Shown here piece by piece: positions 3,518 through 10,940 of a stretch of 64,000 nucleotides of DNA. The notes under the pieces are model-generated. The model worked only from the letters and a program-made list of their open reading frames with translations, had not been told where the DNA came from and searched no databases. The number at the start of each line of letters is the position of its first letter. Position 1 is the first letter of the stretch. Origin of the DNA: Perkinsus chesapeaki ATCC PRA-425 (taxonomy: Eukaryota > Protista > Perkinsozoa); assembly GCA_013115145.1 (NCBI GenBank), contig JAAPAO010000011.1, positions 1 to 64,000 on the forward strand, written 5' to 3'. The position numbers and the translations under genes are program-made.

Positions 3518-5904
3518 TCATCCTCTCTCAACTGTTTGATGCTTACCTCCTTTACCTCCGTTATTGTAGTAACCGCCACCTTTCCCTTTACCCCAGTCGC
3601 TGCCTTTGCCCGAGGGGCTATTCCACGCTGGGCCATTCCACTCAGAGTTCCACGAGCCACCTGAATTGAACAGGTCGTCATCTCGCGACGTCCTCTGTTA
3701 CCACCCTGCCAGTTGCTTTGCGGCTGCGAGTACTGGGGTCCCCATGCCCAATTATCTGCACCCTTGCCTGAAAGATTAAAGTACTACCAGTAAACCGAGA
3801 CAGCGTTACCTCCTTTTCCGGCGCTCCACCAGCCGCTACCATCCCCACTGTAATCTTGCCAACCTTTAGAGCCTATGAATACAAGTCTTCAAACCGTAAC
3901 AGCATATCGAAGCCTACCGCCAGGGTGGCCGCTCCACTGTCCCTTTCCAGAGGATCGTCCCTTACCACTGTGATGTGGCCAGCCTCCCTTAGAGGGTGCC
4001 GGGGGAGGCAGATCAACTGGGAAGGTAGGCCCCTCCACCGCAGCAGGCTCATCGACTGGTTCCTAAATCATGGGCAGCTTATATATGCTGAAGCTCTTAT
4101 ATACCCCTACCGCTGCAGGCTCCTCAACTTCCTTGATCGGTTGCGGCTCCTCCACCATCACTGGGAACTTCGAAGCATCCAGAGTGACTATGAAAACCGG
4201 ATGCTCGACAACGACGCGGTAATACAGGTTCTCCTTGATGGACTTGGAGGCATCCAAAAGCCAAAACCTGTCAGCCTGAAAGTTCCCTAGGCAGCACCCC
4301 ACCCTTTACTTATTGCAACGGCTCAAGTCCTGCTCCGTGTTGTTATATGGGCTCTCGTCGTGGTATGTATGGGGCTTGTGTGACATCAACACCTGAAGCT
4401 TAATAAGCAGCCATCTTCGAGCTCCTGAGCACCTTCATGAACACCGACACCTTCTCCGTCCCAGCAGCGATGTAGTCTGGTATACTGTCGGCAAGGTCGC
4501 CTAATCACTGAGCATGCGATCTGCTGCCCCCCACTTCCGCCACTCTCACGTCTCCATCTATTGCCGACCAAAGCCTCTATCAAGTCACCCGATTTAGCAT
4601 CCTCACTGCATCTGCAATACAGACCGATCATCAGGAAGCCCGGAAAGTCAATGCGTTACACTTCGTTCAGGACTACTTCTTCGCCGCCTTCCTTAGCTGG
4701 TTGGAACCGCCACTCAAGCTTCCAGTGCACCACTGGCTCTTGACGAGGCTCCTGGGGCGCCAATGTGGATTCCCCCTTAGTCGCCTCCGGATCAGCTTTG
4801 CCTGCATCGGCGTTGGGCTCCTCTGTCTTCTCCTAACCCCATCAGTCAGAAGGCGATCCCCCGCCATACACTCCCTACCGGCTGTTGTTGCTGCTGCTGT
4901 TCTCCCTTTTTAGACTTAGGCTTTCCTCCGGGGTACTTCAGGCATGAGCTATTACGCTTTGCCAGCTGGAACAGATCTGGCACTAAGTGCAGGGTCGTCA
5001 AAGGTGAACGCTTAGACAGGAAGTCTCGCAGTCTGAGGGAACGGGAGTAGGTGATGTCACTCCTGACGCTGAAGATTTCGAAATGGAGTTCATCACGGTG
5101 CTCGGGCACCACCGGTGGAGTTGCCTCCGTAGGTGCCAGCCGAAATTAATGTTCCTATTCCTGAGATCGTCCTGCTTGTCCGACCACTACCGCCAAATTG
5201 AGGTCCTCATCGGCGAAATTGATTTCTCAAAGGTGAAACTATCCTTCGCGCATTTTCATTCGGGAAGCGCAGCAGCGCATGAAATGAGCTCGACGTACCG
5301 AGTTTCTCGCGAGACGTGAATCGTTCCGGAAAAAACCTGCAGTACACTACCCCCCTCTATACGGCAATTGGCCCACTTACGTATATCGCGCAGAGTGCCG
5401 CTGCTTCGACCTAGTATTTCGATTAACCTGATAACCACTTGCCTCCCACCTCCCCCTTTCCGAACTACACTGTCATTCCGTGTCTCCAGAGAGTGAGTCT
5501 GTGCCGTGTGAGCCTTACAGGAGGCATCTTCAAGCAGGGATATATCTGCTCAGATCTTCTCCTAGTCCCCCTATCACCAGCTCACCGCGCCTCAGCACCT
5601 TCTCGTCGAACTCGTTTATCGCAACGTGCTCCACCAAAGCCCGCTTGCCTACCCAACAGTCCAGCCAAAACAGTGACCGGCCCATCACCTGTGCACTTGC
5701 TGTTGGCCTTATGAGCATTAACACACGCGAGGCTGCACGTCTTCACACTGCAGGCTGGGCAAGTATATCTGAACTCCACGGCTGATCAAATCGCCCCACA
5801 AAACGCATTGCCGCGCCGAGCTACTACTTGAATTCGCTCTTCTTGCATACTTGGCATAATGACGAGGACGCACTGGCCTCGTCTGTCGTCGAAGACCCAC
5901 TCAT
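3518..5904 (-). CDS. BCD1: Box C/D snoRNA protein 1 (zf-HIT, BCD1/ZNHIT6-like), multi-exon, with a Gly/Trp/Lys-rich C-terminal tail
   Basis: The spliced N-terminus reads LCQVCKKSEFK|YTCPACSVKTCSLACVNAHKANSKCTG|KRALVEHVAINEFDEKVLRR, i.e. a HIT zinc finger plus the BCD1-type downstream helix. The C-terminal half includes FWLLDASKSIKENLYYRVVVEHPVFIV. The 3' end is tentative and there is an apparent frameshift near 3683. Confidence 0.8.
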
Positions 5905-6010
5905 TCCAACGGTACTACTACCCGCTATGATAAGACTTAACGCAAATCGTTGAGCAGACAGTTGCACCACAGGAACGATGCGAGGGTTCGGTGAGATAGT
6001 TGGCAAGGGA

Positions 6011-6067
6011 GAGTAGCATATCATATACAGTTCGTGAGGATTTGGAGCTGAATAGTCATTCGCACTC
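6011..6067 (-). promoter_or_regulatory. SECIS element (type I) in the 3' UTR of the SelT gene
   Basis: The minus-strand RNA reads GAGUGC-GA-AUGAC-UAUUCAGCUC-C-AAA-UCCUCAC-GAACUGUAUA-UGAU-AU-GCUACUC. It has the AUGA/UGA kink-turn quartet, a 10-position helix II (8 Watson-Crick pairs), an apical AAA and a helix I. Confidence 0.85.
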
Positions 6068-6585
6068 GCGACGCTGGACAGGATGGGATGCAGGGAAGTA
6101 GCTCGGGACCTGCGAGCAATGGGGACAGTGTTTGTGTGCCACAATATGATAAAAATGTAGAATTTTCCCAGTTTTCGTCAGGCACTTGATCCCAACTATA
6201 TTCGACGAGTTGAAGGAGGCTACGTTGAAGATTGTTTTCATCGTAGTACATACTTCCCTATTGTGACGTTAATATTATACTGTTGCATTATAAACTATTG
6301 AAAGAGTAGCATATGTATGCTATTAGTACTGTACAAGCTATTACCTACTACCGCAATACGTAGCGCCAGTACAGCTTAAGCTTTGTTAAACAACACAGTA
6401 CCATTCCCACTGAACAGTTCGATAGGAAGCATTACCGCACGCCAATGAAATCCCTAACCCCATCAACTCCGGTATATTTCTTTATTACCCGTTCTCCTCT
6501 CTCCAGTCAGCGTCTACCCTTGGCAAAAATCACACCTAAGCCTTACACCTAAGCCTTTTATCGTCAAGTATACAGGAGGGCGCCT

Positions 6586-7900
6586 TTAGAACGCGAAGTC
6601 AACTCCTTGCCGTTGGAAGGCCTAAGCTGATGATACTGCTAACATCTACGTGCTTAACTGACCATAACGATATCGTTTAGCTTCGGCAGACGGCCTGCTT
6701 GCAGTGTAGACCAGATAAGAGTATTCCCCTTGTAGATCTCGAACGCCCCTACAGGAGATATGCACCTCGGCACTGGTTGCCCCAGTACTACCAGTGTTCA
6801 TTAGGATACCCTGTAGAGTAGAGCCTATGAAATAGACCGCAAAGAACGAAGTGAATTTATTGTCTTGCATGCTCTTCACCAAGTCAGGCGTGGGGATACC
6901 GATAAAGCCGCAAATGGATTCTGATAGTGACGTCCTGGTAGCGTCGCCATCGGAAGACGTTACCTCCAAAAAACACCATCGCAAACAGGAATAGCTGCAG
7001 CATCCCTATAAGAGATGATATATGTTTCACGGACTCCGAAATGGGGTACCTTGGGAAAGAACATCTTTTTAGGGGAACGAAATAAACCTCGGGACTACAG
7101 CATAGCCACTTCGAGCTCGAGAGCGCAGGGTTCTTTGAAAGAGCCTCTTCCTATCTAGTGAATTCCGAAGATTCCTAGCTCATGGGTAAAGTAGGTTCGA
7201 ACTATTGCTATTGTTATGATGAAAGATGCCCAATGGTAGTGGAGTTCAGATACGCTGATCTTTCTAGGCTCTCGAGAATATAAAATATCTATGCGTTTAT
7301 AACAGAAAAGCGGTTTTATTGAGAACATATATATCCACAGTGGACCATCCACCGCAAAGGCTCACACAGGGATCCTTATCTCAGTTATTACTCGACGCCT
7401 CGTATGTCCAGTATCGAAGTAGACTTCTGGTCCAATAATTGAGCTACTTGTTGGAATGCTCCACGGAAAGATCAGCTCTGGCAGAACCTGTCCGCGAATG
7501 AGCCCCACTCGAACGGCGGTTGCCTACTGTATCGTAACCTGGTCCTCGGGCATGGCAACATCAAGATACTCCCTATGCGGAATATCTTCCCCTTGCAGAG
7601 CTGACTTGAAGTATTCTGGCTTCATAGGATTCGCCTGAGTAGACCTCATTCGTCACCGGACCGATTGGCCTCCTATAAATGGCCCGTTTACTGTACCCTT
7701 ACAATTTAATACCATATTATATATACTTTACCCATATTGAACTATATTGCATTGTACTCTAATCACATATCAAATATAGTCATATTCACTTCTTGCTAAA
7801 ATGTCCTAAGGACACTGTCCTTTATGCCTTATTACCATCGCTAGTCCACAGAAGAGAGCCACAAGTAAGCAAAGCAGGTATAACCTTCGATTAAAGCTTC
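6586..7900 (-). CDS. SELENOT: Selenoprotein T (Rdx family) with in-frame UGA = Sec at 7472-7474; multi-exon; start codon unresolved
   Basis: The spliced product includes RRLYLLCLLVALFCGLAM|ANPMKPEY...DQVTIQ|FCQSUSFRGAFQQVAQLL...GVE|YPISESVKHISSLIGMLQLFLFAMVFFG|...DNKFTSFFAVYFIGSTLQGILMNTG|AFEIYKGNTLIWSTLQAGRLPKLNDIVM|AFQRQGVDFAF*. This matches the SelT CxxU motif, TM hairpin and TGAFEI...WS...GRLP motif. Confidence 0.92.
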
Positions 7901-8088
7901 TCAGAATGGTAAAAACAAATACTAACAGATCCGCGAATACAACGATACCTATATCTAAATCTATATCTATATCTAAATAGTTCAATTCAGTTCGAGGTCA
8001 GGTCTACAAATCTTGCACTCACTTGCATTTCCCTTACCGAATCGGGTCTTCGCGGATTTTGAGAACATCAACCTTTTTTATCGTTATT

Positions 8089-10940
8089 ATGAATCCCGAT
8101 CTCGGTACAAAGGCTGCTAAGGCTAGTAACCTCAAGAGAAGGGAGCTCAAGGCCTCTGCTGCTAGGGAGGATCAGAACTCTAAACACAATGCTAACAAGA
8201 TACTCGAAAGCTGGCTCAAGATTATGCGGTAGCACAGTGAAAGATACCAAGCAGGTTGATTGAGCGACCATTTAGAGCATACAAGGCACAGCAGCTCAAG
8301 AGAGATGTCGAAATAATATCGCAGAACCATGAAAGAGACGTTGATAGAAAAGACGCGGTTTTACAGATGCTCGACCGGGACCTTGACGAAGGTGCTCCAA
8401 CGCTTGTCTTCTTTCTGACCTATTTTGGATCTTTAGCCGAAGAACAGCATCAAGTGGCAATACGGTCTGTATTTTCCGATATGGATACGTTGGTGGAGAT
8501 CTTCCAAAGGAAACTGCGAGCTCAAAACGACAAGTTCAATCGGCAAGTGAGATCGACCTTATTTTCGCCAGATCATGTTTTCTTTCATCGTTGCGGAACT
8601 GGTCTCCGCCTGTGCGCTTCAGGATAGTATCCACGAGCAATAAAAATCGGCAGTTTATTATCGCAGATTGCTTACTGCCGACTTCTATTAGAGAGTCACC
8701 TAGCCCCATAGAAATGTTCCTTTTATTGTACGAGAAAACTTTTGTTTAAACATATGTTCCAAAAGGATACATGGAATGGATTCGCTCTACGGCTCCTACC
8801 ATAACTACTCTCAGCTGCTTCTAATGAAGGAGGAGTTCGACACAGAGCGGCGACGGTTGGTGGACCAGCATGGCCAAGAAGTCGCCGAGCTGAACTCTGT
8901 GATCGAGCAGGTGACTCGGCGCTGTATTGTGCATGGTGTTGTAAAACGGATTCAGATTGATGCGATCGAAAAGGCAAGGGAACAGAACGACCTGGCAGAG
9001 CATCAAAGCAATTATGAGATGATACGGAATAGGGATATTGAGGAGGACCATCAGATGCGATCTCATCTCGAGGAACAGATAGAAATACTTAAAGTCGGTA
9101 TAGAAGTGGCTCGGGATTCCTGGATACAGTGCAACAGAACTACCTAGATGTTTGACATATATTGTATGTTATTATACATGATTAGTTATATACTAGAGAC
9201 AGGCGCTGAATACTATGTACTCGGCCGCATTTGTGAGCCCATTTACTATTATATACTGGGACGTATACATGCCACTCAATCCAATGAGACACTTGATTTG
9301 AGTCTCGTAGCCTCCATCGGTGCCTAGTCTAGTGGAGCTAGGTGCCGATGGACGTTGCTGTACTTGTCAGGATCGATGTAATGCTCAACTGGCCTCATAT
9401 AAGCAGGCAACAGATGCCAACACTGCTGACTACAAGAACTACTTGGAACGTGATCGTAAGGGAACTCTCTAACAGTACCATCATTCCTCCACCACTGGAA
9501 GGCATTTTATCGAGTCAAGTTGAACAGAAGCTTCGGCAGGTGGATCGCATTCAGAACGATATTCAAGATCTCCGCCTCAAACTCGACCAGGTGGTGATGC
9601 CCGATGAGTGCCAAATGGCTTACTAATTTCAGAATCGAACGGAATGGGAGGGCCGAAACACTCAACTTAAACGAGAAAAGGAGCAAGTCAGGAAGCACCT
9701 GGCTCAACTGAAGGCCAGGATGCACACAGCCAGGACTGAGGAACATTCAAGGTGTCAACATTGTAGCCTGCCATACCGCTCCGTTGTTAACTGTACGGTC
9801 GATATGCCTTCGGAATATACGAAACTACCCAATCAGAGTTTTCTCGCTTTTTAGTGAATTTCCCGCAGGTTCGTCGACTTATTGCCTGTGAATGCATAGT
9901 CAAATCCGCAGTGTATTCGGGTATTGTTTTTTGCGACTAACAATCGATTGATTTTAGGATGCTGGACTTGGTGTCGAACGCTGAAGGATGCAAACGACAT
10001 TTGAAAGGGCAATTCGAACGAGAGGAACGTATACTGAAGCTGGCCGAGCTATGCAGGAAATTCGAGACGGAGCGAGAGAAGGTCTTGCCGTTCTACACTA
10101 ATGCAGATATGAATGTGGATGAGATAGATTTCGAGGTAGTAGATGGATGGAGTTTTGGAATAGCAGTTAGTTTTATGTAGATAGGATGCTCTATTGTATT
10201 CTAATATATAATATTATTATACAGCGTGAACGAGTCATTGTGGTCCTTAATAAGGACTCCTTATTGTTCAATCCGTTATCGTTCAATTCTGCTACTGTTT
10301 TTGTTTATCTGATTGCTAGAGGAATGAAGTTGTGTAGAATTGACCGAACAAAATGAAATTAGATTATAATTATCAGTACGCCACATGCCTCTTTGAGCAT
10401 GTATGTTTACCGTAATAAATAACAACTACTGCTAGTATCTCTCTTAAGAACGAAGATCTTCGGGAGGAAGTGCGAGACGTGCTTAAACAGCAAGCCAGCA
10501 ACTGTGCAAGCGGCTGCGATGAGACGACTTATCTTGACACCTTCTTCAAAAAGGTAAATCAATTAGCATTTTTCTCGGTGAAATCCTCCCCATTTGCAGT
10601 TTAATAAAATCCAGCTTGACACGCTGGCAATCGAGGCAGAGCAAAAACGACTGGAAACCGAGCGACATCAACTTAGGGATATCCTAAAGCAGTTCGTCGA
10701 CGGTAAATCGGGTTTTGAAATCATCGAGAGCATTTGTGGCAGGTGTTACCGTGAGTCCAGAGGTGCTCACTAAACCTAACCCCTTGCTTATAGTGAATGG
10801 CAGAGTCAATCTTAATCAAATGGGAGCCAGACAAGCTGCGGGTCGGACAGAACTGATGGAAAAATGTTATTGTGGCCGTCGCAGGTGCCGGCTTGCTAGG
10901 GAAGCCTGTTGTCCAGGAAGCTCAAGTAAAATTCAAATGA
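8089..10940 (+). CDS. DRC2: Dynein regulatory complex subunit 2 (CCDC65), multi-exon
   Basis: It contains the hallmark segments [34 protein letters not shown](A)[33 protein letters not shown] and [22 protein letters not shown]. Confidence 0.9.

Follow-up and report, generated by a model that had tools for sequence, protein, structure and literature searches.

The minus strand of contig JAAPAO010000011.1 of Perkinsus chesapeaki ATCC PRA-425 carries, from position 7921 to about 5958 of the 64,000-nucleotide (nt) stretch that we analysed (the window), what is very probably an expressed gene for selenoprotein T (SelT), with an in-frame UGA predicted to be read as selenocysteine (Sec) and a selenocysteine insertion sequence (SECIS) in the 3′ untranslated region (3′UTR). 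A first-pass annotation, made from the letters alone, had proposed a hidden SelT at 6586-7900; its lower limit holds, as 6586 is the last base of the TAA stop codon, but its extent falls short of the gene on both sides, the 5′ exon reaching 7921 and the 3′UTR about 5958. The minus strand reads TGA at 7474-7472, and the 40 nt at 7527-7488 start with GTAGGC and end with GGACAG. When these 40 nt are removed, the sequence becomes ...GTT ACG ATA CA/G TTC TGC CAG AGC TGA TCT TTC CGT... (the slash marks the joint), that is VTIQ-FCQS-TGA-SFRGAFQQVAQLL, just as the annotation had read it, and the same joint is found exactly in RNA contigs of three runs. The continuation of the frame through further spliced exons, also proposed there, is borne out, given that the hydrophobic stretch beginning with YP, then TGAFEI, WS and GRLP follow in the expected order with the frame changing at GT-AG boundaries, and that GT-AG introns are seen in the contigs. 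The rebuilt coding sequence comprises 7 exons, 543 nt and 180 amino acids, with TGA as codon 42 and the TAA stop at 6588-6586. All seven introns are GT-AG; six precede the stop codon and the seventh lies in the 3′UTR. The RNA data are assembled contigs from four public runs of two studies, mapped onto 5300-8300 (X1, X2, X3 and X5 below), and the features are the following:

7836-7921, minus strand: exon 0, open in the SelT frame and signal-peptide-like, with a spliced leader at its 5′ end (acceptor AG at 7923-7922) and ending in the only in-frame ATG (7838-7836)
7635-7835, minus strand: GT-AG intron of 201 nt (joint 7633 to 7835, 201 letters skipped, in X1 and X3)
7528-7634, minus strand: exon 1 (ANPMKPEYF...EDQVTIQ), from sequence and RNA contigs
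7488-7527, minus strand: GT-AG intron of 40 nt, the one named in the first-pass annotation (joint 7485 to 7526, 40 letters skipped, in X1, X2 and X3)
7392-7487, minus strand: exon 2, 96 nt, FCQS-Sec-SFRGAFQQVAQLLDQKSTSILDIRGV, from RNA contig pieces at 7389-7485; identical in P. olseni around the TGA (100%)
7472-7474, minus strand: in-frame TGA, the predicted Sec codon (residue 42 of the model), from sequence and conservation
7050-7391, minus strand: GT-AG intron of 342 nt (joint 7046 to 7389, 342 letters skipped, in X1, X2 and X3)
6964-7049, minus strand: exon 3 (YPISESVKH... and the first hydrophobic helix), from sequence and RNA contigs
6921-6963, minus strand: GT-AG intron of 43 nt (joint 6920 to 6964, 43 letters skipped, in X3)
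6792-6920, minus strand: exon 4 (second hydrophobic stretch, ...LMNT), from RNA contigs and identity with the public protein P0001
6749-6791, minus strand: GT-AG intron of 43 nt (joint 6747 to 6791, 43 letters skipped, in X5)
6663-6748, minus strand: exon 5 (GAFEIYKGNTLIWSTLQAGRLPKLNDIVM), the part matching the Pfam family Rdx (E=0.004 on this piece alone)
6622-6662, minus strand: GT-AG intron of 41 nt (loose end of X5 at 6662 and the C-terminus of the transcriptome open reading frame P0004)
6489-6621, minus strand: exon 6, with the last 11 codons, TAA at 6588-6586 and the first 97 nt of the 3′UTR, from RNA contigs and P0004
6110-6488, minus strand: GT-AG intron of 379 nt in the 3′UTR, lying between stop and SECIS (joint 6107 to 6487, 379 letters skipped, in X1 and X2; flanks conserved in the P. 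olseni copy L001)
5958-6109, minus strand: terminal 3′UTR exon with the poly(A) site near 5958, from the X1 contig end
6011-6067, minus strand: candidate SECIS hairpin, with AUGA at 6059-6056, apical AAA at 6043-6041 and GA at 6022-6021, from conservation, fold and the Rfam match of P. olseni

All the reported joints read CT..AC on the plus strand, which is GT..AG for a gene on the minus strand. Five of the six introns before the stop, as well as the 3′UTR intron, appear as joints in the contigs, and the 41-nt intron is seen via a loose end: that of X5 at 6662, when reverse-complemented, reads CCTTCCAACGG, the beginning of exon 6, and the C-terminus ...IVMAFQRQGVDFAF of P0004 agrees with it. 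An alternative frame of the last exon, ending in ...LRPSNGKELTSRSKGALLYT, was rejected, as both the X5 loose end and P0004 give ...IVMAFQRQGVDFAF. At the other end of the gene, the loose end at 7923 in X1 and X3 reads GTAGCCATTTTGGCTCA after reverse complementation, a DinoSL-type spliced leader; the spliced leader of P. marinus is ACCGTAGCCATCTTGGCTCAAG (PMC3101222). The X1 contig terminates at 5958 in a run of T on the plus strand, which corresponds to the poly(A) tail. The mRNA can thus be chained from overlapping contig sets, with X3 giving exons 0-4, X5 and P0004 giving exons 4-6, and X1 and X2 giving exon 6, the spliced 3′UTR, the SECIS and the poly(A). Retention of the UGA in mature RNA, the check proposed with the first-pass annotation, was answered by the same contigs, those of three runs including the TGA exon with one unplaced base difference in it. 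The spliced piece of exon 2 (7389-7485) spans the TGA, and therefore the mature mRNA neither removes this codon nor ends at it.

The sequence around and after the TGA was compared with two genomic copies from P. olseni (L001/L002 and L003/L004). Both copies have the TGA and the 27 bases around it (AGGTTCTGCCAGAGCTGATCTTTCCGTGG) without any change, while the adjacent intron is unalignable. Among the 26 codons of exon 2 that follow the TGA, 11 differ between P. chesapeaki and P. olseni, 8 of them synonymously and 3 conservatively (F>Y, I>M and V>T), a pattern of change that is, at the sequence level, the signature of a translated frame under purifying selection. Two unrelated, intronless homologues from environmental assemblies have open reading frame (ORF) calls, P0007 (in L005) and P0006 (in L006), that begin just past the TGA site. 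Upstream of these calls the frame reads ...VVTVQYCDS-TGA-SMRGTYQQLAQ in L005 and ...EVLIEYCTS-TGA-QYKSTYNQV in L006, and both TGAs align column for column with ...QVTIQFCQS-TGA-SFRGAFQQVAQ of P. chesapeaki. The proposal that this TGA is recoded is therefore supported by its conservation in P. olseni and in the two homologues, by purifying selection and by a conserved SECIS in the 3′UTR, and the UGA almost certainly codes for selenocysteine. As for the Sec machinery that the first-pass annotation called for, it finds support at the level of the genus, additional file 2 of PMC4342817 listing eSelB (eEFSec) for P. marinus; a tRNA scan of the 64-kb window returned none. Sec-containing SelT has been reported in Amoebophrya, a related syndinean (PMC6394959), and in Toxoplasma (PMC3737529).

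A blastn comparison of the locus with P. olseni gave three conserved blocks, two of which are coding exons, and the third is an island of 75-80 nt at 6067-5993, the sole alignable 3′ island. It reads GAGUGCGA-AUGA-CUAUUCAGCUCC-AAA-...-UAUAU-GA-UAUGCUACUC, and its 5′ core (GUGAGUGCGAAUGA) and 3′ core (AUAUGAU) are invariant between P. chesapeaki and the two P. olseni copies. AUGA at 6059-6056 and (U)GA(U) at 6022-6021 form the AUGA...GA quartet of a SECIS at the base of helix 2, and the AAA lies 12 nt past AUGA, in agreement with the unpaired apical AA(A) of these elements, whose usual place is some 10-13 nt past the quartet, with a helix 2 of 9-12 pairs. All three sequences fold to the same hairpin; in P. 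chesapeaki 8 of the 12 positions of helix 2 are paired, against 10 of 12 for P. olseni. One pair of this helix is exchanged on both sides, C-G of P. chesapeaki standing against G-C of P. olseni, a compensatory change; at three other positions a change on one side maintains or adds a pair, and at one position pairing is lost. The P. olseni element has an AAA bulge and a 3-bp mini-stem (type II), whereas the apex of the P. chesapeaki hairpin is 4 nt shorter and forms an open loop of 11 nt (type I-like). The P. olseni orthologue matched Rfam SECIS_1 (RF00031) over model positions 1-64 of 64 with 20.1 bits and E=0.067, under the gathering score of 35; because this score is not reached, membership rests on motifs, position and conservation. 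Another candidate, GUGA...GA at 6532-6496 in the first UTR exon, came from a SECIS script and was rejected on account of its poor helix, its non-canonical core and its lack of conservation in P. olseni.

In the X1 and X2 contigs the last coding exon is continuous with the spliced UTR, the hairpin and the poly(A), which places the candidate SECIS in the same mRNA as the UGA. The hairpin begins 147 nt past TAA in the mRNA, compared with 526 nt in the DNA, and 564 nt past the UGA in the mRNA. The flanks of the 379-nt UTR intron (...ACGG/GTA... and ...CAG/GTyCyGAGCTACTTCC) recur in P. olseni L001, and judging from these sequences the intron is probably conserved there with a length of ~108 nt, at about L001 5322-5429. 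Such an intron leaves an exon junction beyond the UGA and also beyond the true stop; this might render the mRNA sensitive to nonsense-mediated decay and tie its stability to Sec decoding. The contig with this 3′ arrangement (X1 record 1, X2 record 3) carries 100 unmatched letters upstream of 6624, which are absent from the window on either strand and whose junction is not at an AG acceptor. This contig end is probably a chimera, or it may derive from a second locus with the same 3′ end.

Assignment of the protein to SelT, with the CxxU of the family at the TGA as first proposed, draws on an Rdx match in the C-terminal half, a hydrophobic insertion and the position of the CxxU. The Pfam Rdx (PF10262) scores were 21.8 bits for P0001, the annotated protein of the window itself, 23.5 and 25.0 for the P. 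olseni orthologues P0002 and P0003, and 23.5 for the transcript ORF P0004, with a cut-off of 22.6, and TIGR02174 (SelT/SelW/SelH) gave E ~2e-4, below its cut-off. The hydrophobic insertion divides the fold, and the true exon 2 is missing from the public models, which is why the Rdx match is confined to the C-terminal half. The CxxU directly follows the first beta strand (VTIQ-F-C-Q-S-U) and is aligned with CDSU in L005 and CTSU in L006, and Kyte-Doolittle windows exceed 1.6 from HISSLIGMLQLFLFAMVFF through ...ICGFIGIP, a stretch that separates the CxxU helix from the half with TGAFEI; the C-terminus has TGAFEI..WS..GRLP. SelT is told from SelW by two features, a thioredoxin-like fold that contains Sec in a C-x-S-U centre and a hydrophobic insertion anchoring the protein in the membrane of the endoplasmic reticulum (ER) (PMC4840926), and the spliced model has both. 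The closest Atlas clusters, by language-model features, were 'selenoprotein T homolog CG3887' (0.92) and 'putative SelT-like protein', which we take as leads only, and the top match in the PDB was weak, to MIEN1 / C17orf37 (2ljk; E=0.086). MIEN1, a soluble member of the Rdx family, weakly shares the TGAFEI...L..G..P segment and has neither the hydrophobic insertion nor Sec, a kinship at the level of the superfamily only. Sequence features therefore support a place in the SelT branch of the Rdx family, and by analogy with mammalian SelT (PMC4840926) the protein would reside in the ER and act as an oxidoreductase.

In the mechanism that we propose, the pre-mRNA is trans-spliced to the spliced leader and loses its seven GT-AG introns, giving a mature mRNA of ~0.9 kb that retains the UGA at 7474-7472 within the F-C-Q-S-U redox motif. 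The SECIS 147 nt past TAA would then recruit the Sec machinery (SBP2, eEFSec and Sec-tRNA), the UGA would be read as selenocysteine, and the predicted product would be a thioredoxin-like (Rdx) oxidoreductase of 180 amino acids, held in the membrane by its central hydrophobic hairpin.

Several observations speak against a UGA decoded in this way. The P. chesapeaki hairpin is mismatched at 4 of the 12 helix-2 positions, its energy of -10.9 kcal/mol (z=0.16) is no better than that of shuffled sequence, and Rfam found no SECIS at E<=10 in the whole window, in 5200-8200 or in the 106 nt of 5985-6090. On the RNA side, no one contig covers the whole mRNA, and X1, X2 and X3 each differ from the genome by one base somewhere within 7389-7485. 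If the UGA, which is a standard stop codon, were a real stop here, only a peptide of 41 residues would be made, or the gene would be a decaying pseudogene with its downstream exons untranslated, and both the Rfam result and the thermodynamic weakness of the hairpin would side with such a case. It is nonetheless exceedingly improbable, given that the frame after the TGA evolves under purifying selection (of the 11 changes in 26 codons, 8 are synonymous and 3 conservative) and runs on through four more properly spliced exons into a conserved Rdx C-terminus, that the TGA stands at the same column in four independent sequences, and that the SECIS core is invariant between species.

The functional mRNA could also bypass the UGA and encode no Sec at all, through omission of exon 2 (the P0002 case) or through different splice sites (the P0001 case); both public models do avoid the TGA, and the 96 nt of exon 2 can be skipped with the frame preserved. 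However, all three of the RNA contigs that cross the region include exon 2 (joints 7528/7487 and 7392/7049) with no exon 1-exon 3 joint reported, the P0001 splice sites are found in no contig and give 41 residues in an unconserved frame, and skipping would lose the CxxU redox centre along with helix 1 of the Rdx fold, so that we regard a bypass as very unlikely. The unplaced letter by which X1, X2 and X3 each differ within 7389-7485 would fit a strain, in the RNA runs, with Cys or another sense codon at the TGA, and thus a Sec/Cys polymorphism in P. chesapeaki. A word search with P0001:1-75 for RNA-contig ORFs, made to place this difference, found nothing, and metagenome contigs gave no match to an exact pattern of the exon 1-exon 2 junction, spliced and with NNN at the codon. 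That the difference hits the TGA is improbable, with a chance by position alone of about 3 in 97 (~3%), only 3 of the 97 positions touching the codon. Between the genome assembly and the two P. olseni copies the TGA does not vary, and searches of suitable length range gave no full-length read-through ORF from any transcriptome, which makes a sense-codon strain extremely unlikely. A UGA retained in the mRNA and read as selenocysteine is the interpretation that we keep in what follows.

The first-pass annotation had also anticipated that gene callers would mis-model such a gene, and they did: the public P. chesapeaki protein reads exon 2 out of frame and the P. olseni one skips it. A word search with exon 4 retrieved P0001, 100% identical over this exon, together with two P. 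olseni proteins and a transcriptome ORF. P0001 is 'hypothetical protein FOL47_000536 [Perkinsus chesapeaki]' of 183 amino acids, and P0002 is FOZ61_002142 of P. olseni, whose UniRef name is 'Selenoprotein T'. Exons 3-5 are correct in both. P0001 has an unsupported ATG start (MVLNCKGT), switches frame within exon 2 (...EDQV/LPELIFPWSIPTSSSIIGPEVYFDTGHTRRRVITEIRIPV/YPISE...) and runs into the next intron, and ends in ...IVMVS instead of ...IVMAFQRQGVDFAF; none of its incorrect joints is present in the RNA contigs, and 41 of its residues are wrong. P0002 goes from ...ITIQ straight to YPIPD and is thus missing the 96-nt CxxU exon. Among transcriptome sequences there are two MMETSP ORFs, P0004 and P0005, each of a different Perkinsus species, in which spliced exons 1 and 0 appear in antisense and are fused to exons 4-6 in sense orientation, in window coordinates 7552-7635 (plus strand) and 6589-6879 (minus strand), with the P0004 junction at a GAAGAG microhomology. 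We rejected them as isoforms, the antisense-sense fusions being fold-back cDNA artefacts, and it is because they are such chimeras that their N-termini are odd.

At the 5′ end, exon 0 is open in the SelT frame across all its 28 codons (VFVFTILRSFNRRLYLLCLLVALFCGLA) and contains in this frame a signal-peptide-like stretch, RRLYLLCLLVALFCGLA, homologous to the leader of P. olseni (...SFILAKFYRRFSLLPLVLLSFGLAS). Compared across species, the leader scores 36 in the SelT frame vs <=25 in the other frames. In P. chesapeaki there is no in-frame AUG between the upstream stop at 8000-7998 and the spliced-leader junction, nor is there one within the leader sequence; the spliced leader joins directly at 7921, and the first AUG (7838-7836) falls at the predicted cleavage site, which is occupied by TCG or AAG in P. 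olseni. An ATG stands at the head of the leader in L001 (leader region 3950-4100) and not in L003 (310-450), another in-frame ATG lies 14 codons further up in each of the P. olseni copies, and an in-frame AUU/AUC-CUG, at roughly 7908-7903 in the window, is common to P. chesapeaki and P. olseni. We would tentatively suggest, as a possibility on the unlikely side, that P. chesapeaki SelT either uses a near-cognate start close behind the spliced leader or has, in recent evolution, exchanged a secreted-type start for one without a leader. A microsatellite-like run of GATATAGATATAGATTTAGATATAGG occupies 7941-7985 on the minus strand, just upstream of the spliced-leader acceptor, and was skipped as a repeat in the contig mapping (7938-7983).

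In comparison with mammalian SELENOT (PMC4840926), the Perkinsus protein has in common the Rdx fold, the C-x-S-U after the first strand, the hydrophobic insertion that is absent from SelW, the C-terminal half with TGAFEI...WS...G.LP, a similar size and a SECIS in the 3′UTR, the motif being CVSU in mammals and CQSU in Perkinsus. Unlike its mammalian counterpart, the Perkinsus gene is trans-spliced, has seven short introns and a SECIS behind a 3′UTR intron, and in P. chesapeaki the signal-peptide-like N-terminus lacks an AUG. Like Toxoplasma gondii SelT (type II SECIS; PMC3737529) and Amoebophrya selT (PMC6394959), it is an alveolate SelT gene with a single predicted UGA-Sec and a 3′UTR SECIS, a likeness in gene features. 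The type II shape of the T. gondii SECIS is matched by the P. olseni orthologue, while P. chesapeaki has an open loop instead, with 4 nt of the apex lost.

The next gene downstream, on the same strand at about 5300-5900 of the window, is of zf-HIT/BCD1 type, has a syntenic counterpart in P. olseni (L001 5677-8064) and starts no more than ~100 nt from the SelT poly(A) site. X5 shows two introns in it, of 41 and 40 nt. In the region of this neighbour, a weak Rfam match to the C/D-box small nucleolar RNA Afu_294 at 5217-5300 (minus strand; 19.7 bits vs a gathering score of 43, E=1) is probably due to chance.

The SelT family, its motif and the recoding mechanism are textbook matter, and animals, Toxoplasma and syndineans were known before to have Sec-containing SelT, so that the Perkinsus gene is a further member and not new biology, and what is known of SelT or of Sec decoding is unchanged. 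The locus illustrates that a SECIS can sit behind a 3′UTR intron, in which case genomic scans just past the stop misjudge its distance, here 526 nt in DNA vs 147 nt in mRNA. Our reconstruction corrects the public record, in which the P. chesapeaki SelT model has 41 wrong residues and the P. olseni model is without its catalytic exon. It also adds a member to the Perkinsus selenoproteome, and as such bears on redox defence in these shellfish parasites and on surveys of Sec use in alveolates.

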